From NCBI GenBank assembly GCA_965644295.1, contig CBFFRP010000207.1:1-64000 (forward strand): a stretch of 64,000 nucleotides of DNA. The letters run 5' to 3'. The notes beneath the pieces were generated by a model that searched no databases, was not told the DNA's origin, and saw only the letters and a list, made by a program, of their open reading frames with translations. Numbering within the stretch: the first letter of the stretch is position 1; every line of letters starts with the position of its first letter. Of this stretch, positions 2 to 53,761 are shown piece after piece. The stretch is from Paraphysomonas bandaiensis (Eukaryota > Protista > Chrysophyceae). The translations under genes and the position numbers were made by a program.

Positions 2-3000
2 GCGTATTGACGGCCAAAAATATCTCAATTTCAAAGTTTCAAGCATTCGTTGTGTTCCTGGATGCGTATATCCTTCATGGAAATACTTCATTAGTTGAAA
101 ACGTAACACCTGAGGGACCATAATTTGCCAATCTATTGATCCCTTGTTTTTCTGAACATGTTTTCTCAATAGTGTCTTGTGCGATGGTTCATCTGCATTC
201 TCATGTAACTTGTAAACATGACCATCCACTTCTAACTCATGGCCAGTTTCAAAATTTGATAACTGTGATATAATCAATCCAAGTTGAGTATCATTTTCTT
301 GGATCTGAAACATACTCTCTCTACTCGAAGGCCACTTAATCTCCGGATCTTCTTCCGGATGATCTAATAAATATTGATCTGATAACTCCCATAATCCAGA
401 TTCTCCACATACGGCGAATGGGTGAGTATCATATCTATCCAGTTTCCCTGACAAAGGCCTCCTATGACCAACCACTAACTTATGCGTTTCATCATAATGT
501 ATTGAAGCAATCTCATATTTTTGGAAATTATCGTCATCAATATATTTTCTGCCTACCAGATATTGCAATTCGTCAGCAAGTGATTGGCATTGTACTAGGT
601 TCTCATAAGAGTACTTCTCCAAAGCGTCGGTTTCTAGATATCGGAGAGTTCTCTCGAAATTCCTAGTATTTCGTTCCTCCAACTCAACAAGTTCCTGGAT
701 TCTGAAATTTTCTTCATCGCTGTACTTAAAGACTTTGGAATATAGTTTCTCCTGAACTTTCCGTTTTTGATCGTACACAATTAACTCAAATTCATCTTTA
801 AAAGACACGGTAGTCTTCCGTCGAGATCCATCTAAATTCAGAATTTGATTATCTTCTGGACTAAGTTGATCACTTCTAGTACTCCAAAATTCTTTACCAT
901 AGTCAAAAAATATTTCATCCCCAGGCAAGATCTCTCTAAGAGCCATCAAAACTCCTTTAGATTTTTTCCATATCAATTTCGCATTAATCAATTGTTTGGA
1001 TATCCCATCATTCGCATATCGACCTAAGCTTGAACCAGGTTCCCATCCATCAATAACAATCTTACGATGTGCTCCAGCAATCATCTGCATCCCATAATTG
1101 GAGCTTAATTGATCCACTCCTTCAGATACAACTGGACCCACATAATCACAAATCTCAACATTTGGACAGATCTGTTTGGTGGCAAAAAGTCCCCATCCTG
1201 CTCTTAGCTTTGTCGATGGAAGAATAGTACATTGATTGTAACCAGAAATTCGTCGTTCTCGAATTAACTTCATATCTTCTGACTCATCTGGATTATCCAT
1301 ATAGTTTGTTCGAGATGGATGAAAGCTAGTTCGGTTCGTGTGTGCAGTTGCATGTTGTATATTCTGTCCCGCATTGCTGAATTTCATCCTTGACTCACCA
1401 GTTTCCTGAACTTCCGTGATATTCAATTCTTTAAGTAGATTCTCGACTTGGCAACTATATTGTTCTACATCGATACAAAGCTGCTTCCTTCTTTTTAATG
1501 TAGAGCCAGCAACTTTAAATCTAACTGCAGAATTTTCTAATTCTGAACTTTCCCCTAATACTCCCCCTTCCTTGACATCAGGCAAAGAAGACAACAAATC
1601 CAAATCCAGCGCATCACAATTACAGATTTGAACCTCAAATTTGCTAGAGCAAGTATGAGTTTTCTTAATAGTTTGCGCCTCCACAACCGCTTGGCGTTTC
1701 AATTTACTCAACTGTCGTTTTGCAGCCCCCCATGATCGGATGAGGTCTGGATCCTCATTATCAACCACCGGCCCGAGATGATCTGAGAGCTCCTCCCTAG
1801 TAGCTGGCGGTACATCCCCTATTTGCCAAAGGCGACTTAACATATCAGCAACTACATTTTCCACCCCTTTTTTGTAATGTAAAGCAAAACGATATGATTG
1901 AAGATCCATGAGGTATCCCAGCAATCGTGGATTAAGTGTTGCAGTCACTGAATGGACCATATATTTCAGGCAATTGTGGTCAGAATGGACTTCAAATTTA
2001 CGACCACTACTCAGATAAATATGCCAATGGAGAATAACATCCCTGAGGGCCTTACATTCCAAATCCGTGGCCGAGTAATTTCGTTCAGCAGGAGTTAACT
2101 TACGACTGAAATATTCCACCGGATGGAGCTGCCCTGCGTCATCATGCTGCATGAGAACCCCACCGATACCACGCTTTGTCTTGGAAGCATCCAGGTGAAT
2201 GACAAACGGTTTAGAATTATCAATGTAACGAAGCACAGGAGCCTTCCGCAGCGCCTCTTTAAGCCTCTCCATGGCATGGCCGTGTATCTCTGGGCGCCAG
2301 AGTTTCTTCACGTTGACATTTTTCTTCGTCAAGTCATACAGAGGCAACGCAACGTCTGCGTATTGAGGAATATACTGACGATAGAATGAAGTACTTCCTA
2401 AAAAACATCGAACAGCCGTAACGTCCTCTGGGTCTGCAAGATTTGTAATCGCCTCAACCTTCTTCGGATCAGGGCATCGGCCGTTTCTGGACAGAATATG
2501 TCCAAGGAACCGCAGCTCCCGATAATTAATATGAGTCTTTTCAATTTTAAATGTAAGATGACGATTTCGAAGTCTATCGTATATGGACTGCTGTGTCAGG
2601 AAATGTGCACGAAAACCCCCAGTATGGTTAAGCACATCGTCCAGGTATGCAGAGACTTGAAACCGATCCATGTCTTCAAAAGTCTGGGCAATGACTCTAC
2701 TAAAGTGTGAAGGTGCATTGACCCAGCCTTGTAACATCACCGTATACTGTAAATGAGCGTTATGAGTGCGGAATGCCGTTTTAAATCGACTATCAGCGTC
2801 AAGCTCCACACAGAAAAATGCATCAGCAATATCGCCCGCTGAAAACCGGTCAGTTCCCACAGGAATGCTATCTAGCAAGTCATCAATCCTGGGAAGTGGA
2901 AAAATATCTACCTTAGTTTTCTGATTGAGCGATCGGACATCTGAACACATCCGAAAAAATGTGGCCACTTCAGGCCAGTTAACCTTTTTGAAGATTTCTA

Positions 3001-3598
3001 AATGTGCCGTGTCTCCCCATTTATCTAAAAATTTCTGAATACGGTCATGATAAGGAACCAGAACTAAACCATGGCTCCAATCACTGTTTGAGGGTTGAAG
3101 CTTTTTCTGACGAAGCATCATACCAGTTTTAGCCTCTAAAAATGCTTGTTGCAATAAAGAATATTTCCGAGGTCGCGCCCGAACCGGAACTTCATCAGTA
3201 GTTTCAATACTCACTTTATAATCCTTAATCCGTGGAGGGTTATCGGGATCAGGAAAACAGAAAACATCAATATTGGCCAAAGCTTGAGCCAAAAAATAAT
3301 CACGTTCATTATGATGTGAAGCTATAGTATCCGCGTCGATAGAAATCTCCCCTTGCAACGAGACTGCTTCATCATCCTTATATATATCCAGCTTAGTTAA
3401 AATCAGTTCAATACACTCTTGAAGACGGTCAGGAGTGTACTTGTCAAATCGTGGTTGAACTGAATTTCGCTGACACAAATCCACTAAATTCCATAATTCC
3501 ACAGGGAATGACTCCGGTCGTGGACAATCCGAAGTCGTATCGGCTATGTTAACAGGCGGTGGCTCCGGAGGTGGCCGATTCACCTCTTTGCCGTCTAC
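2..3598 (-). CDS. pol: pol polyprotein (RT, RNase H, SET domain, integrase N-terminal Zn-binding domain), open to the window edge
   Basis: Manual translation gives 1199 codons with no stop: FRMCSDVRSLN..FPLPRIDDLL, KTAFRT..MLQGWVNAPSHF, YLDD (2636-2647), FLGH; RNase H IHLDAS..NYSATDLE..SDH..ENVVADMLSR; SET 884-1231; integrase start VPQVLRFQLMKYFHEGYTHPGTQRMLETLKLRYFWPSIR (2-120). Confidence 0.95.
884..1231 (-). other. SET domain embedded in retrotransposon pol
   Basis: AGWGLFATKQI..EICDYVG ... IVIDG..SSLGRYANDG..INAKL ... LMALREILPGDEIFFDYGKEFW: all four canonical SET motifs in correct order and spacing. Confidence 0.93.
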
Positions 3599-6500
3599 TC
3601 ATTTCGATGAGGACACCAGCCTAGTGACATTTTCGTGATTCTCTTCAGATAACATAGAAACATCTGAATGCTGGAATTTGTCATCAGTAGGCATGATAGT
3701 GGTATCCTCCGTCTCGACACTGCCATTCATAGCAGTTTCCACCGTCTCCTGATTATGAACCTGCATCCCCAATAATATGGGTTGAAGTCGTACAACTAAA
3801 CGCGGTCTACCCGGTAGATGTATCCAATCATCGGTATGATTAGAAGCCCATATATAAGGTCTGTTCGCCGTACAAATAGCATCTTCAAATTGTAAGACGG
3901 GCTCATTAGCATCATCACCTGAATTAATCCTTGCAACCTCTGGCAGAGTCTGTATCCATCCACCTAACGGAGCACCCTTGCCCACTTGAACAGGAATCCG
4001 CATCTTAGAATGCGGTGGGATATGTTTCGATATGCAGACTGCAGCCTTGTGAGGTTGAGGTTTGTTTTCACGGAGATGGCGTGCAACACATTTCTGTACC
4101 ACAGGGTCCTGAGCTGATGCCATTTGCGTAACAGTCTCATTCCAGTTGAATTGAGGCATTGCATACTGAATACCATTAGTTTGGAACAACAGCAGTTTAT
4201 GATCAAACAAGTCAATCATTTTGATACGTCGTAATGCATGCCCTCCAAAGATTACATTCATGGAACAATTCGGGATAATTGGTATCCATGCTTTCAACTG
4301 AACTTGTTCCCTTGCATTGTTCAAAAGTGGTGCCTCTCCCGGCAACACTGCCACAGGTAAGACCCGTTGTGCAGTAACAGTGTAGGTAAGACAAGCTCTC
4401 CAACTCACAGCGATATCCTGTGAACCTATTCCCCGAATAATGTACCGGTCTCTCTTTGGGATTCGTACTCGCTTAAGATTCAAGAGGGCTGCACACTCTT
4501 CGTCGATCAAGGACTCCATAGAGCCATGATCCACCTGGTGCCAACCGACTCTCTGTACTGGTTTACCAGTTTCATCAACTGTATCATATAGAACACGAAA
4601 CATGGATAATGTATCTTGAGATTCATCCCTAGGTGTCACAGTGTGCACTAAGTATCGAACTTTTTGTGCAGCATGAACCTTTCGTTTGGGTTTTGATTTT
4701 GACTTAGTAGATCGTGAACCGGAAAGTGAGTCTGTACTGTGAGCAGGTATAGAGTCATCCAGTGTAGAGAAAGAAGAGTCATCATCACTATCCGCCCAAT
4801 GTACTTGTGGTGTACTAGAAACACTTGATGCTATGGAATTAGATTTCTTCCGTTCGCCACCAATGAAAGTCGTATGCAAAGCACTCCCTCCATCCCACCG
4901 GCTAGTCAAATCCCGAAATGCTGCCTGAAATTCCTCCTTCTGAGCCGTAGGCAACTGAGACCAAGGTTGGCTATACTTATTCAATCTGGACAACCAAAAA
5001 TTGTATATTCGATTCCTTTCAATGTTACGTGGTGTCTCAGACACAAATCCAAGTGGGTCAAATTTCCCATTCGTGATGCGTCGGCATTGAGCGTTGTTAA
5101 TACTATGTCGAAGGCCACATCGTGAACATGTAAGCCTCGCAATCTCAATCGGTGTGAGAGATTGTTTGGGTTCCTCGCGTATGCCGGCATGAACTTTGTG
5201 ATGTCGTCGTAAGCCACCCTCACCCTTAGTTGTGTCTGGTTGTTTACTAGATTGGACATCAGGACGTATAATGTATAGCAGCGTTCCCTGCTGGAATTCT
5301 TCCTGAATCTCTCGCCAGATTGATTCTACCTCCTCCCATGATAGACTCCAATTTTCAGTCGACTTCGCCCTTTCAATTTTTGTGATCTTATTGTCGTACG
5401 CTGCAACCAACGATTTACCCCAAACAGGCTCTTTTCCTACCACTCGGCGCATAGATTCTTCCATCACCTGTGCCGTCTGGCGATCCGGCGTATTATGTTC
5501 AACTACCTCTTTTAGTTCATAATATAGTTGCATAACTGCTGTAGGCGTAGCGAGATCAGGAGCAGCCCAGTCCTCAATCTGTTTGGCACGCTGTTCATTG
5601 GTCTGTACGGGACAATAATTACGGATAGCCCAATGGCAGAAATGCACCCAACGACGCATCCAAAATTCATATTCAGTGGCTAATTGGCTATCCTCCTGGT
5701 CATCCCATATCTCTGGCACACGATTCAAAGACAACCGTTGCAGTTCCTCTTTAAAGCCGCCCTTAAAACACCAACCATTCTTTGTCTGTATGACCAAATC
5801 TTTCAGCCCCATCTTGGCCTGACGTGCCTTCTGGACAGCAAAACGGAGTCCTCGTTCAATGGGGTATCGATTAGAATGATCTTTCTCTAGACGCATCTTG
5901 TCATCAGTCTTCATGTAGAGAGTAGGCTCCTTGACTTCTCTTCTCCATGGAGTAGCTTTGGGCAATGCTTTAGACATTAACCGCATGGCTCTAGACGATC
6001 GCATTTGGTTACAGAGCAGTGACCAGTGTTGCTCTCCAATTTGTTGAAGGTGACACCCGAATGCTTGTGCGTCTAGCAGTCTGCCATCTTCAGTTGGATA
6101 AATACGGGAATTCGATCTTGAACCCCTAGAACTCAACACTCGGGATGTACTTGATCTGGTATCCGCTGACCGACTTCCTCTGCTGACAAAGGAACCCCGA
6201 CTACCATTGCTGACGAAGGAGTGGTATGACTCATCGTCAGAGTCAACGGTCCTCTCTTCCCAAGATCCAAATTTTTTATTTTGCTGACTGAGTTGTTTGC
6301 TGAGGAGATTGCAGCGCATCATTAGTTGGCTATCGGCCTCCTCCCACATAGTTTCAGCCATGTCTCTTATATCAAGGTATTGGTTCAGCACCATACACAA
6401 TTCCGCTGTTTCGTAAATGTGCTCTTCAGCCACTAACTCATGTACATTGTCAAGAACTGTCAGCCTACTTAACCACTCGCGAACATTTGATGGTAATTGC

Positions 6501-7669
6501 AAGCCGTTTCCTCGATTTAAGACTAGTTGGGCAAGCTGAGAAATATCTTCCGCAGAACTCTCTCTTGCTATTTTCATTTGCTCAAAAAAGTGGTCCTTTA
6601 AACGATCAGTGACCTCAGTAGCTGTACAAGCCATGTAAATCTGCTGCTCCCAATGCTGCAGTGGCTCTGCTATATGAGCGGTGTATCGCTGTCTTGACCA
6701 TCTGGTGGTATGTACCCTCCGTCGATCTGCGTACTGTTGCAGGATGTTAAGAGAAATCTTTAGGTCCATAGGGTCTCTAGCCCCACGATCCAGGTACAAA
6801 TGCTCCATATATGTGTCCTCGTTTAGGTCTGGCCGAGGACGCAATCTTCTATGGCCCAATATTATGCACTTCTCTAATGTGTCTGTGGTGGGTCTCTTTG
6901 ATCTGAGTATCCCCCTTCTTACTCGGCATCGATAACATAGACCACCCTGAATTTCCATTGAATTCACCTGGTCCTTACAATCAATACATTGATTTTCCGA
7001 GCAATAATAACATATTCCTCCAGCGGTGAGACGCTTGGGATCTGTGAGTCGCTGACAGATTTGACACCTATCTGCATCTCTACCTAGTTGGTCTGGTCTG
7101 CTGGTGTTATATACACCTTGCAATCCAGAGGTGGAATGTAGCACATTGTGTGCTTCATCCCCTGCGTGAGGTAAGGGTGTATAATGACACTCCTTTGCCT
7201 CAGCCTCCTTGTTACTTTGTTCCTTGAATGGCAAGGGGTCCATATGTAATGGACTATCTCCTGTCGCATCTGCATCAAACGAACAAAAATCATCCTGAGC
7301 CCTCAATGGTTGAATAGCGTCCTTACCGAATGCGAGAGGTTTTCGGGCTGACAAGGGTACCTCCTCCGGACTACTAAGACGATCCACCAGTTCTGGAACA
7401 GTCGTTGCTTGACTGTCTGCTTCATGAGTTTCTGTCTCTCTAAAGTCGTCACTTTGTTTATTGAGAGATGAAATTTCCTTAAAAAATTGAGACACCAACG
7501 TCTCTGATTCGATCTCAGACAACCCAAATGCCAAGCCTATATCCCGGATTTGATCCTCACTGGCATTGGCAATGGAAGGGTCTAACCCTCCAAGCATAAG
7601 CCTGAGGGTCCTTCTCACTGACTCGAATTTAGTAGACTCTTGTGCGCTATCAAGAGTCTCCTCCTCCAT
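3599..7669 (-). CDS. gag: gag-protease ORF (1356 aa) of the Gypsy element
   Basis: CCHC-like knuckle CSRCGLRHSINNAQC (5084-5128), retropepsin-like region VDHGSMESLID...NVIFGGHAL (~4230-4540), N-terminal Cys8 cluster (6926-7066); directly upstream of and in frame with RT. Confidence 0.88.
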   Translation of the reverse strand: MEEETLDSAQESTKFESVRRTLRLMLGGLDPSIANASEDQIRDIGLAFGLSEIESETLVSQFFKEISSLNKQSDDFRETETHEADSQATTVPELVDRLSSPEEVPLSARKPLAFGKDAIQPLRAQDDFCSFDADATGDSPLHMDPLPFKEQSNKEAEAKECHYTPLPHAGDEAHNVLHSTSGLQGVYNTSRPDQLGRDADRCQICQRLTDPKRLTAGGICYYCSENQCIDCKDQVNSMEIQGGLCYRCRVRRGILRSKRPTTDTLEKCIILGHRRLRPRPDLNEDTYMEHLYLDRGARDPMDLKISLNILQQYADRRRVHTTRWSRQRYTAHIAEPLQHWEQQIYMACTATEVTDRLKDHFFEQMKIARESSAEDISQLAQLVLNRGNGLQLPSNVREWLSRLTVLDNVHELVAEEHIYETAELCMVLNQYLDIRDMAETMWEEADSQLMMRCNLLSKQLSQQNKKFGSWEERTVDSDDESYHSFVSNGSRGSFVSRGSRSADTRSSTSRVLSSRGSRSNSRIYPTEDGRLLDAQAFGCHLQQIGEQHWSLLCNQMRSSRAMRLMSKALPKATPWRREVKEPTLYMKTDDKMRLEKDHSNRYPIERGLRFAVQKARQAKMGLKDLVIQTKNGWCFKGGFKEELQRLSLNRVPEIWDDQEDSQLATEYEFWMRRWVHFCHWAIRNYCPVQTNEQRAKQIEDWAAPDLATPTAVMQLYYELKEVVEHNTPDRQTAQVMEESMRRVVGKEPVWGKSLVAAYDNKITKIERAKSTENWSLSWEEVESIWREIQEEFQQGTLLYIIRPDVQSSKQPDTTKGEGGLRRHHKVHAGIREEPKQSLTPIEIARLTCSRCGLRHSINNAQCRRITNGKFDPLGFVSETPRNIERNRIYNFWLSRLNKYSQPWSQLPTAQKEEFQAAFRDLTSRWDGGSALHTTFIGGERKKSNSIASSVSSTPQVHWADSDDDSSFSTLDDSIPAHSTDSLSGSRSTKSKSKPKRKVHAAQKVRYLVHTVTPRDESQDTLSMFRVLYDTVDETGKPVQRVGWHQVDHGSMESLIDEECAALLNLKRVRIPKRDRYIIRGIGSQDIAVSWRACLTYTVTAQRVLPVAVLPGEAPLLNNAREQVQLKAWIPIIPNCSMNVIFGGHALRRIKMIDLFDHKLLLFQTNGIQYAMPQFNWNETVTQMASAQDPVVQKCVARHLRENKPQPHKAAVCISKHIPPHSKMRIPVQVGKGAPLGGWIQTLPEVARINSGDDANEPVLQFEDAICTANRPYIWASNHTDDWIHLPGRPRLVVRLQPILLGMQVHNQETVETAMNGSVETEDTTIMPTDDKFQHSDVSMLSEENHENVTRLVSSSK

Positions 7670-9114
7670 AATAATAGCAATATAATCAAATCACAATGAA
7701 CAAATATATGTCTACAACTACAATGCTATCTACCAGCAATTTCAAGAGTAAGGAAATTGCATCTTATTATCAATAATATAAATATGTCTACCTACGATTC
7801 CGTGATCAATGGAATGAACATCATTCATATTCAATACCAAACACATCAGTCTAACACAGTTGATCATAATAACTCATCACAACTGTATAAGGGAAGATAC
7901 ATTCAGTATTCTCTTTGTAGTTGAAGCCTGGTATTCGTACTCCTTAGTACAATCAATCCCCAATAAGCACTGAAGGAAATACGTAATGTATAACTGTATT
8001 ACTGGATAATCTGGCAATACACATCTATCAGCGTGGATATCAAACCCGGAATTCTCCAGTAAACTTCTCCAGCCTTAAAGTCAATATATATATATAATAA
8101 GAACTTATATATATATCATCCATCATCAGTATCATCATTATGTCTCATTATTGATAATCATGTCTTTCTTTGTCTTTTGAATGATTATGTAAATGTCAAT
8201 GATAAGCATGAATTGTCATAGTCATAATACATCATATATCTCAGTGTGAATTATGGTAATAATAATAATATTCAAGCTATGTTTGCACAGATAGTATGTA
8301 CAAACTTAAGCATATACAATAGAGAGCTTGTAGAATAGAATAACTTGATAGCTGGTTATTACACGAAAACATACGGTACTGTACTGTGTAAAGCTATTAA
8401 TTTATGCTTTTAGTTAGTGCAATATTGACTGATTGATATTATAGGAGATATAGTAAGTAAGTTTATGATGTTGTAGCACTGTGAGTTAGGAACCACGTCA
8501 TTCACCAACATCAACATTCTGTTCTACAAATCATATCTTTAACAGCTACTATATTTTCAGTTTCTTTGTATACTTGTAATAGCTACTCCTATACTGTAGT
8601 CATGTATATTCTGTATTTCATTGCTACATAGAATACAGGATAACTAGTAGCGATTGGCTTTACCAAACTTCAAGTACGCACGTAGGAGTTGGTTGTAGTT
8701 CAATAAAAGCATTAGTACAAGCTGGTAGAAACATGCAGATGTAAACTCTTTTGATTACATCGATGCAATAATTTTCCCTTTCTTTTAACAAGAACACAAA
8801 TCAGCACAGTGGATGATGGCATCTGAAAAGATACGCAACTGCAATAGTTGCATAGTAAAAACGTAAAAACCATGTATATATACGAATACGACACCTCAAG
8901 CGCAATAAAAATACAATTTAACGTTATATTTATTAATTGCTTACTACGAGCTAGAATTGATTACCAAGATATTACATTGATCGTTTTTTCGATATCAACA
9001 TTGCTGACACGGAATTGCGACAAAATGCAGCAGGCATTTGAAAGCAACTGTAAAGATAAAGATGACCGTATATTCTATAAACTTTCTTTCAGTTGTCATA
9101 TTACTTGCCACATT

Positions 9115-24762: not shown

Positions 24763-27545
24763 ATGAATAGTCCATTAAACGTAGCAGCAGCAGGAGGGAA
24801 TCTCGCAGCTGTTAAGCGTTTATTGATGAATGGAGCAAATGGAAGTGCCGTGAACGGCCAGACACCGCTTCATTGGGCAGCATGTAGACAGAGTTTTACG
24901 AAAAAAGAAGGAGATTTTGTGAGTGTGATGGAATGTTTGCTAGATCATGGAATCCCCATCAACGAAAGAGACAATGAAGGATATACTGCTCTTCACAATG
25001 CGGTGATGTATTCTATGCCGAGTGACACTCATGCCATTCTTCGACTCCTTTTGCAACGAGGTGCTGATGCGACCATCAGGTCGCACACCGGCGAGACACC
25101 ATTCGACTGTGCCGAAAGTGAAGATGTTCGTAATTTCCTAAGGATGCATGGTGCGGCTCCTTTGCCAGTTGTAGAAGAACAAATCATCGAGGTGTGTATT
25201 CCGGTGGTTATCACAGGATGCATGTGTTTGGAGAGAATAGTCTCATACTATGTTATTGATGGGCATAGATTGTAAGTAATAGTATTATATTGTGTTTATT
25301 TGCACGATAGGTACGAGGTGTAGAAGATAGAGTCCAAGAATTGAATGACACTGAGGCGGCACTTCTAGTTGCAGCTCTTGCAGCCTCGGAGGAGGAGTAT
25401 GAGCGTGCGACGACTGCCAGGAGATTACAACAAGAAGCTGAGGAGAGAGAGAGGCAAGAAGAGGAGGTCTTGAGAGAGAGAACTGCTCGCCAAGCAGTGG
25501 AGAAGAAGGAGGAAGATGAGAAGGAACACGCTTTGCGGGTTGCTATAGATACAGTATTATCGGGTGGAGCACCCGTCTCCTTGCCCTATGATCTTGTTCG
25601 TAAGTGGACTGGTGGGTTCAAGAACGAACTTGATAGGGGTGCTTATGGAATAGTTTATAAGGGATTGGTGACGTTTGCGGACGTTGAAGAGTGTGGAAGC
25701 GCAGGCGGTGATCATGATGTAGCAGGTGGACGATATGTTGCAGTGAAGGTTTTCAACACTGAAATGTTGACTGATTTTGTCGGAGTGGGTGAAAATAAAC
25801 CAGATATTGATATGGTTAATGGCGACAGTAGTAAGAATAGGATGTTGGAGAGCGCATCCAGGGAAATCAATATATTGAGCACCTTTAATCATCCAAACAT
25901 CATCCGATTACTTGGATATACACTCCCTGCTGTCGATGTGCTTCCTGCGCAAGGGCTAAACAACATTTGCCTAGTGTATGAGTATGCCTCGAGAGGGGGG
26001 TTACATAATGTCCTGAAGGATGATACACAAGCATCAGAGTTGCCCTGGTTCCAACGGGTTAAAATTGCACTTGGTGTGGCAAAAGGTTTGGCGTACATGC
26101 ATCACAGAGATGCTAATCGACCTGCTTTCCATCGAGACATAAAAGCTGCCAATATTGCTCTTACCAGTGGATTAACCCCTAAAATTATTGATTGTGGATT
26201 GGCGAAGTACATGCCAGAAAAAGAAACAAATATGAAAGGTCCTACATCGATTCACTCCATGACTGGAGCTCGGTTTGGGACTGTGGGATACATGTGTGAG
26301 AAATATTGCAAAAGGGCAGAGATGTTGTTTGATGCAAAGTGCGAGATTTTTTCTTTTGGTATTGTCTTATTGGAGTTGTATTGCGGTGAGATTCAAGGAA
26401 GCAATAGTGAACTCAATCTGGAAGAGATGTTAGATGATGAGGACGATATGATATCTGCTGACCAGCGCGCCGGATCATGGCCGGAGGAGGCAGCCAGCTT
26501 GTACCTTGAACTGGCTTCGGAATGTGTAGCCAAGTACTCAAAACGAAGGTCAAACATGCGTTCTGTAGTGCAATCTCTCTCTCGTATACTGGCACTTCAC
26601 CAAGTAAGCACTTTAGAGTCTTCACTCTTACAACTACGTGATCAATTGACGGCCAAAAATGAGTTATTATCATTGAAGTTGGATGTTGCCGACCGACTGT
26701 CTTTGGAGTCTATGCATAACTGTATTGTTTGCTTCAATACTTATCCTTTGAGCAAGGGAGTAATGTGTCCTAGAGAGAACGTGGAGGATTTGAATGAGTG
26801 TCATTTCTTTTGTGATGAGGATTTCAGTGACATGATTAGTTCTCAAAGCTCTGATATTGGTCAGTTCATCAAATTTGGCTGTAAGATTGTCTGTCCGATG
26901 TGTCTGGCAGTGCCTGTACCGCAGGGTGAAGTTCAGGTTCAAACCCAATTGCCTCTATCTGCTCATGCCACAGAGGAAGCATTATCATCATATATTGAAG
27001 CGTGTAGAAGGGCTGATCGAGACCTTGAAGACAGAAAGAATGCAGTAGAGCGGGCTAGAGATCAGGAGAGACATATGGACGAAATGCAGGCGTTGAGAGA
27101 GGAAATGATGGAAAACAAGACAGCGAAGCTAGCTGCCTCTGCTGAGCGTCATCGACAACGTATTATCAATGATATTCTTACGCTAAAGTGTCCACATTGT
27201 GGGCTTACTGTCTTCGACTTTGATGCTTGCTTCGCTGTACAGCATTCTCCAGATGCCATGCGAGGTCACGGTCAGGGCTGTAGTAGATATTTCTGCGGGT
27301 GGTGTTTAGCGCCAAGTGAAGGGTCGGCAGCTTGTCACAGCCATGTCAAAGTATGTCCCGCTGCCCCTGCACAAAGACGAGGAAGCTGGAATGGTAATAT
27401 GGATGAGTTTAATGTTGTTCATGGACAACGACGGCGAGCAGCAGTGTTACAATACTTGGCTGACCGAGTGCCAAATTTGGAGGAGAAGACTGCAGTTTGT
27501 CACGCCATTGCATGCGACTTGAACGATTTGAACATCTATCTGTAA
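24763..27545 (+). CDS. Ankyrin repeat - IRAK/Pelle-like (TKL) kinase - RING/RBR-like fusion protein
   Basis: The ANK ORF (TPLHWAA, TALHNAV, TPFD) joins the kinase ORF in frame via a phase-0 GT-AG intron 25192-25310; kinase motifs LDRGAYGIVY, VAVK, HRDIKAANI, DCGLAK, GTVGY; C-terminal CIVC..C..HFFC..CPMC and CPHC..DFDAC..C..FCGWC. Confidence 0.85.

Positions 27546-52225: not shown

Positions 52226-53761
<1,536 letters not shown>

Follow-up and report, generated by a model that had tools for sequence, protein, structure and literature searches.

We report that a Ty3/Gypsy retrotransposon of the chrysophyte Paraphysomonas bandaiensis encodes a SET domain, of the kind found in lysine methyltransferases, inside its Pol polyprotein, between RNase H and integrase (IN). 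The stretch analysed here, referred to as the window, comprises positions 1-64000 of contig C207 (64,000 nucleotides) of a 62.6-Mb genome, and it holds a single copy of a 10.3-kb long terminal repeat (LTR) retrotransposon that has been active recently; the contig end truncates this copy. The domain order of this element is putative protease, reverse transcriptase (RT), RNase H (RH), a variable linker, SET, a conserved module and integrase, and the SET domain is an inherited, selected part of the Gypsy polyprotein. This Gypsy lineage appears to carry its own candidate chromatin-marking enzyme to its landing sites.

The Pol frame occupies positions 2..3598 of the minus strand and contributes 1199 of 1526 codons, the contig start cutting the integrase; it was missing from the list of open reading frames (ORFs) because it runs off the contig start. 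From its N-terminus, and always on the minus strand, it encodes a reverse transcriptase (Pol aa 215-369, window 2492..2956; Pfam RVT_1, E 9e-19) and an RNase H (aa 439-569, window 1892..2284; Pfam RT_RNaseH_2 and, at 460-569, RT_RNaseH, E about 1e-28). Then come a first linker (aa 601-790, window 1229..1798) and the SET domain (aa 791-910, window 869..1228), for which the Pfam envelope spans aa 801-901 (window 896-1198) and which was detected by Pfam, by profile comparison, by AlphaFold2 (AF2) modelling, by Foldseek and by VIA. Downstream of SET lie a conserved core of about 90 aa that we call link2 (aa about 1005-1095, window 314..586) and the first 39 residues of the Pfam family Integrase_H2C2 (aa 1161-1199, window 2..118). 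About 230 aa separate RNase H from SET and about 260 aa separate SET from the integrase zinc finger. The complete Pol of another copy, on contig C119, is 1526 aa long and extends past the zinc finger (Integrase_H2C2, 1161-1217) into the rve core (1235-1331) and a weak Tf2-type SH3 domain, with RT, RNase H and, last, integrase ordered as in Ty3/Gypsy elements; apart from that weak SH3 match, Pfam revealed no Chromo domain in the complete 1526-aa Pol.

The two regions flanking SET differ in how far they are conserved. Linker 1 is family-specific and not conserved among relatives: phmmer gave no match below E 1e-3 in relatives except in a near-identical metagenome copy (P0001), and none below 1e-2 in a sister family of the same genome (family 2, below), while its ratio of non-synonymous to synonymous rates (dN/dS, omega) was 0.23-0.36. 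Link2 is kept in all members of the clade, at E 1e-17 to 1e-31; it had no sequence match in the PDB when searched as a 12-sequence profile, no meaningful Atlas neighbour and, with the Pfam threshold relaxed to E 5, still no family that recurred.

The identity of the SET domain was supported by sequence profiles and by its predicted fold. A Pfam search recognized it with 31.5 bits against a cut-off of 22.4 (E 2.6e-7) and covered the whole model (1-105/105). A 191-aa SET region searched against 1.84 billion cluster representatives gave 495 matches at E ≤ 1e-3, and 63 sequences were aligned (alignment A1). Compared with solved structures, the A1 profile retrieved G9a at E 8e-17, followed by EZH2, KMT2C, KMT5A, PRDM12 and PRDM9 (to 1e-12, with EZH2 and KMT5A at about 1e-16), and its alignment to the solved enzymes brought the GWG, SY, R-x-x-N and GEE-x-x-F-DYG-x-x-W motifs into register (G9a reads GEELGFDYG). 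The AF2 model built with the 63-sequence alignment had a mean predicted local distance difference test score (pLDDT) of 84.5 and a predicted template modelling score (pTM) of 0.79; a model from the single sequence (pLDDT 31.5) was discarded. Foldseek matched the SET model to SETD8, PRDM9, G9a and MLL at probability 1.0, and VIA-align matched it to SET7/9 (Z 15.4, root mean square deviation 3.0 over 138 residues), MLL1 (14.7) and SETD8 (14.6). Giant-virus SET proteins in BFVD matched the model at a similar level, and the nearest Atlas clusters are SET proteins of 140-150 aa from Nucleocytoviricota and bacteria. Beside SET we found no cysteine-rich pre-SET or post-SET clusters, and its C-terminal flank is helical in the AF2 model, as in SET7/9 and SETD8. 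Word-index protein searches with the SET and link2 regions, using an index that is insensitive at about 35% identity, returned the same element only, in two ENA assemblies.

These results bear out an earlier note made from the window sequence. It had described a stop-free minus-strand frame from 3598 to 2 that the ORF track lacked, and this frame indeed has 1199 codons without a stop; every motif quoted from it (ENVVADMLSR, GWGLFAT, DYVG, GRYAND, ALREILPGDEIFFDYGKEFW and FHEGYTHPG..RYFWP) is present. The Pfam SET match it had expected at 884-1231 falls within that range, at 896-1198, flanked by RVT_1, RT_RNaseH and Integrase_H2C2, and its proposal of a Gypsy element with an intact SET domain between RNase H and integrase agrees with the Pfam order in the window and with the complete C119 Pol. 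It had further predicted that profile or structure searches would recover the domain, and Pfam, the A1 profile, Foldseek and VIA all did so. The compact viral or bacterial type that it had recognized, without pre- or post-SET Cys clusters, is likewise what we observed, the Atlas and BFVD neighbours being small SET proteins.

The key SET residues of the element are G801-W-G803, Y819-V-G821, Y835, R860-Y-A-N863-D864, E895 and Y900, the last at the position of the catalytic tyrosine. Motifs I (GxG) and II (YxG) are present, with G803 in 62, Y819 in 61 and G821 in all 63 of the A1 sequences, and so is motif IV, which reads G-D-E895-I-F-F-D-Y900-G. Invariant across A1 are G821 of YxG, E895 and Y900; conservation reaches 90% or more of the 63 sequences at S795, G803, L804, F805, Y819, Y835, N863, D864, N872, I890, G901 and W905. 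We consider it somewhat more likely than not that the SET domain is catalytically active.

The element that carries this domain has moved recently. The complete copy on C119 measures 10,277 bp and is bounded by a pair of 876-bp LTRs that are 100% identical. Nine full-length copies are present in the genome at 97.4-100% nucleotide identity, besides fragments and solo LTRs, and four of the nine show 0-2 nucleotide differences across the entire element. The youngest four insertions are on contigs C119, C123, C201 and C210. The ends are TG...CA, and six insertions that could be read from both ends are flanked by differing 4-bp target-site duplications (CAAA, CTAG, AGTC, AATA, TTTT and ATAT), and therefore represent independent integrase-mediated events and not assembly duplicates. 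The frames of ORF1 and Pol are open in eight of the nine full-length copies. In pairwise comparisons with the C119 copy, dN/dS ranged from 0.14 to 0.30 for ORF1 and from 0.16 to 0.30 for Pol; between C119 and the most diverged copy, Pol had accumulated 65 synonymous and 40 non-synonymous changes (p 4e-19).

Selection on SET itself was resolved among more distant relatives. A sister Gypsy family in the same genome (family 2; contigs C476, C661, C339, C463 and C654) has the order RT, RNase H, SET, integrase, and its SET domain scores 44-51 bits with Pfam, which also matched PRDM2_PR. Identity between family 2 and the window family is 45% in RT-RH, 36% in SET, 37-40% in link2 and 45% in integrase; SET has thus diverged along with the other parts of Pol. 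Among the copies of family 2, SET showed 14 synonymous and 3 non-synonymous changes (omega 0.06, p 1.5e-7), and a second pair showed 9 and 1 (omega 0.03); omega in the same family was 0.04 for link2 and 0.01 for integrase. The RT-RH-SET-link2-IN arrangement was also found in the metagenome representatives P0013, P0014, P0016 and P0153 and, in partial form, in P0002, P0015, P0025, P0155, P0004, P0007, P0011 and P0057, all from metagenome assemblies. A scan of JGI and ENA metagenome contigs with link2 as the clade marker yielded 12 loci, 11 of which extended far enough to be informative. SET lay upstream of link2 in all 11 and in most of them shared a frame with link2 and integrase. Where dS could be estimated among metagenome loci, omega for SET was 0.05-0.15; L068 and L069, for example, differ in SET by 35.5 synonymous and 11.5 non-synonymous changes (omega 0.05, p 1e-14), with omega of 0.03 in RT and 0.04 in IN. 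Purifying selection on SET is about as strong as on RT and integrase, and the block of SET, module and integrase is kept in a single reading frame across a marine-protist Gypsy clade.

When the 63 SET sequences were placed in a maximum-likelihood tree, the 13 transposon-linked rows all fell on one side of a split with 99/96 support, amid short fragments of unknown context. The topology fits a single old acquisition of SET, without proving one. None of the host SET genes was closer than 24% to the Gypsy SET, and nothing therefore indicates that this host was the source of a recent capture. The earlier note had also taken the intact frame to suggest a young, selected element, a view that the near-identical copies, target duplications, open frames and low omega uphold. 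The retention of SET beyond this one copy, which that note had left to further comparison, is evident from the nine copies, the 45%-identical sister family and the 11 of 11 informative metagenome relatives, and its evolution is not neutral (omega 0.03-0.15 in family 2 and the metagenome loci).

SET domains were not confined to Gypsy elements in this genome. A Pfam scan gave 98 SET matches, about half of which are near-identical, full-length and located within open frames of 800-3700 aa. A LINE-like (long interspersed nuclear element) family accounts for roughly half of the 98. Its ORF of 2468 aa, at L071:876-8279 on the plus strand (G000:C426), carries SET at 1177-1281, Exo_endo_phos (APE) at 1348-1596 and RVT_1 at 2036-2315; the ORF also occurs at L019, L021 and about 45-50 further places, and an ORF of a related type was seen as well. 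Most SET loci of the genome are thus borne by retroelements, and an N-D-P-L-D signature is common to the LINE-like and Gypsy SET domains. In both classes SET adjoins the enzyme that cuts or joins target DNA, which is integrase in the Gypsy elements and the APE endonuclease in the LINE-like family. This position beside a DNA-inserting enzyme in two unrelated classes suggests a role at the target chromatin more than one in particle assembly or reverse transcription.

Taking these observations together, we propose that SET and link2 would stay attached to the integrase, or travel with it, in the pre-integration complex and so enter the nucleus. There, SET would bind S-adenosylmethionine (SAM) and methylate lysine, most likely on the histone tails of nucleosomes at the integration target or close to it. 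The methylation may help to choose the target, may set the chromatin state of the new copy, or may do both. For the statement as a whole, namely that an active Gypsy element bears a SET domain that writes lysine methylation at its integration target, we estimate a probability of roughly 55%.

Several points weigh against this proposal. The Asn-His pair of SET motif III is lacking: the first position is Asn in 57 of the 63 A1 sequences and otherwise Gln, and Asp replaces His in 61 of 63. A large subgroup of the transposon-borne relatives reads Gln-Asp (GRYAQDP). The motif III His is required in SUV39H1, and as it is replaced here, canonical catalysis is not assured; PRDM9, for its part, is active without that His. 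The variant of motif III is conserved and not decayed, and the proposed function, be it histone methylation at insertion sites, as the earlier note had also suggested, or modification of other proteins, is weakened a little by Asp in place of His and, in many relatives, Gln in place of Asn. A predicted complex of SET with this genome's H3 and H4 and SAM scored 0.18, which is evidence neither for nor against binding. Within the window family the SET counts are too few to demonstrate selection on SET alone (3.5 synonymous and 3.5 non-synonymous differences, p 0.17), and on the transposon-linked side of the tree no branch is longer than the one leading to the SET of this family. That SET remains joined to integrase after protease processing is a step that we infer. 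Finally, one metatranscriptome contained six short contigs that are 99-100% identical to the element, one of them at window 897-1086 inside SET, but these constitute weak evidence of transcription because DNA carry-over is possible.

The variant motif III bears on a different view of the domain, in which SET would be non-catalytic and would act as a histone-tail or nucleosome tether that steers integrase, by analogy with the chromodomain of chromoviruses. Asn-Asp in this element and Gln-Asp in many relatives would suit such a role, as would the constant placement of SET in one block with the conserved module and integrase, and integrase-linked chromatin modules of known elements are tethers (Gao et al., 2008, as cited in 10.1101/2021.11.30.470311). 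However, Y900 and E895 are invariant, GxG, YxG, Y835 and W905 are nearly so, and omega is 0.03-0.15, all of which is more than binding alone seems to call for. The Asp that takes the place of His is itself conserved (61 of 63 sequences) and suggests a working variant pocket. We consider a mere tether unlikely.

An active SET could, alternatively, have a non-histone substrate, which may be a product of the element itself (Gag, RT or integrase) or a host factor for silencing or DNA repair. The nearest fold by VIA is that of SET7/9 (Z 15.4), an enzyme that methylates many non-histone proteins, and the top VIA entries are what we take to be complexes of SET7/9 with TAF10, ER and DNMT1. In sequence, the domain lies nearest to small SET proteins from giant viruses and bacteria, few of which have a known substrate. 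Against this, SET neighbours the enzyme that inserts DNA in the Gypsy as well as the LINE-like elements, a location that best suits a chromatin target, and none of our results points to a candidate non-histone substrate. We regard this alternative, too, as improbable. A spurious match, a chimera of assembly or annotation, or a neutral passenger captured in frame only recently, to which the modest single-sequence Pfam score (31.5 bits) and the few SET changes within the family might have pointed, has a negligible probability and is refuted by the strong profile and fold matches, by nine copies at independent sites with target duplications, by the recurrence of this architecture in the sister family of 45% identity and in metagenome relatives drawn from several studies, and by omega far below 1.

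The remainder of the element was delimited in the window as follows. The 5' LTR (876 bp, TG...CA) lies at 7488..8363 on the minus strand, as mapped from the C119 LTR pair; the 3' LTR of the window copy lies beyond the contig start. A polypurine tract, GGAGGGGGTAG, directly adjoins the 3' LTR. ORF1, which is gag-like and includes the putative protease, encodes 1356 aa at 3599..7669 (minus strand); it starts with an ATG within the LTR (element position 695) and ends with a TGA at 3599-3601. We found no tRNA-type (TGG-type) primer-binding site after the 5' LTR. A 10-nt stretch located 7 nt past the LTR is complementary to a stretch within it (element positions 883-892 and 606-615; in the window about 7472-7481 and 7749-7758, minus strand). 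This complementarity, with a chance of about 0.02, and the ORF1 ATG inside the LTR give hints of a Tf1-like self-priming, with a transcript that might start near position 606.

ORF1 and Pol were searched as separate pieces. A Pfam search of ORF1 matched no family, the protease included. A putative aspartic protease region (ORF1 aa about 1017-1197, window 4079..4621, minus strand) was located by BLASTP to the N-terminal, DTG-bearing region of the metagenome relative P0013 (E 2e-11). The presumed active site reads DHGS (ORF1 aa 1046-1049, window about 4523-4534, minus strand), as against DPGS in sister family 2 and DTG in the metagenome relative. The in-frame TGA between ORF1 and pol is retained in all nine full-length copies, whereas in sister family 2, as in several of the metagenome relatives, the ORF is continuous and lacks it; this difference suggests that the ribosome may cross the TGA by stop-codon readthrough. 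RNA structure downstream of the TGA was nothing unusual (z -0.93). In some of the Gypsy relatives (P0013, P0016 and L046:6206-9751), protease and RT are separated by an Exo_endo_phos endonuclease-like domain, an uncommon feature in an LTR element. This domain is absent from ORF1 of the window family, and that of the metagenome Gypsy relatives showed no significant similarity to the LINE APE domain of this genome.

The element was also found in sequencing runs of 15 studies, which comprise marine, seawater and hydrocarbon metagenomes and cultures under four organism labels. In four sequencing runs examined for joints or indels, with 5,899 letters of sequence as the query, none was seen; three of the four are undeclared libraries, and X15 is probably DNA. 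Downstream of the element in the window lie genes for a protein kinase (25341-27545, plus strand) and a RuvB-like TIP49 ATPase (52457-53761, plus strand), and because these are ordinary host genes the element has inserted in gene-bearing DNA. The same SET subfamily was encountered in a non-transposon context as well, in a metagenome protein of 2700 aa (P0028, on a 140-kb contig) in which two SET domains occur together with PRMT5 and DOT1 methyltransferase domains.

Chromatin readers (chromodomains and PHD), DNA methyltransferases and methyl-CpG binders are already known from retrotransposons. If the proposal of a SET domain that marks the integration target is correct, a histone-lysine writer in the Pol of an active LTR element, maintained by selection throughout a clade, adds a new move to the conflict between transposons and host chromatin: such an element could impose a histone state where it inserts, or pre-empt it. 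In a broader version, two unrelated retroelement classes would each have a functional histone-lysine writer fused beside the enzyme that inserts their DNA, paired in the Gypsy elements with a possible reader, and would place a mark at the integration site. This would amount to transposon-encoded epigenetic self-marking or anti-silencing, and we found no paper describing a transposon-host chromatin interaction of this kind; we put this version forward only tentatively and consider it doubtful as a whole. The system lends itself to experiment, given intact near-identical copies, insertions that can be compared with empty alleles, a small expressible domain and an independent LINE-like case, and a natural SET-integrase fusion might interest builders of targeted chromatin tools.

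Among the closest counterparts are the chromoviruses (such as MAGGY and Tf1), which likewise have a Ty3/Gypsy LTR Pol with an extra, integrase-linked chromatin domain inherited vertically within a clade. In chromoviruses, however, this domain is a reader of methyl-lysine at the C-terminus of IN, whereas here a writer-type SET lies between RNase H and IN and there is no chromodomain. Retrotransposons that encode DNA methyltransferases acting on cytosine, or methyl-CpG-binding domains (de Mendoza et al., 2018, 2019, as cited in 10.1101/2021.11.30.470311), have also acquired an epigenetic enzyme or reader in their coding capacity, but they act on DNA cytosine and not, as predicted here, on protein lysine, and they differ in host lineage and in the position within Pol. 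SET methyltransferases figure, in general terms, among the chromatin families for which Grau-Bove et al. (2022; 10.1101/2021.11.30.470311) report fusions with domains of transposons. The entries examined there are a mixed set of gene models with several exons, plus one singleton 'RT_RNaseH_2,SET', and none of them shows RT-RH-SET-IN in an LTR element for which copies, target-site duplications and selection are documented. SET goes unmentioned in a review on the accessory domains of retrotransposon polyproteins (PMC6338049), and a literature search for RT-RH-SET-IN elements found no paper describing one, although an example listed in the tables of Grau-Bove et al. could have been missed.

Among proteins with SET domains, SETMAR, which belongs with the fusions listed by Grau-Bove et al., also combines SET with a transposon-associated domain in one protein, but it is a domesticated host gene and not mobile. 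The compact viral and bacterial SETs (chlorovirus vSET and those of giant viruses) share with the present domain a core of about 120-150 aa without Cys-rich pre- or post-SET, and they are its nearest Atlas and BFVD neighbours; they stand alone, whereas this one is embedded in a polyprotein of 1526 aa and has Asn-Asp for Asn-His. SET7/9, SETD8 and PRDM-type enzymes are the best structural matches (Z 14-15.4) and have a helical C-terminal flank in place of a zinc post-SET, but with a sequence identity of 17-23%, no orthology and another domain context.

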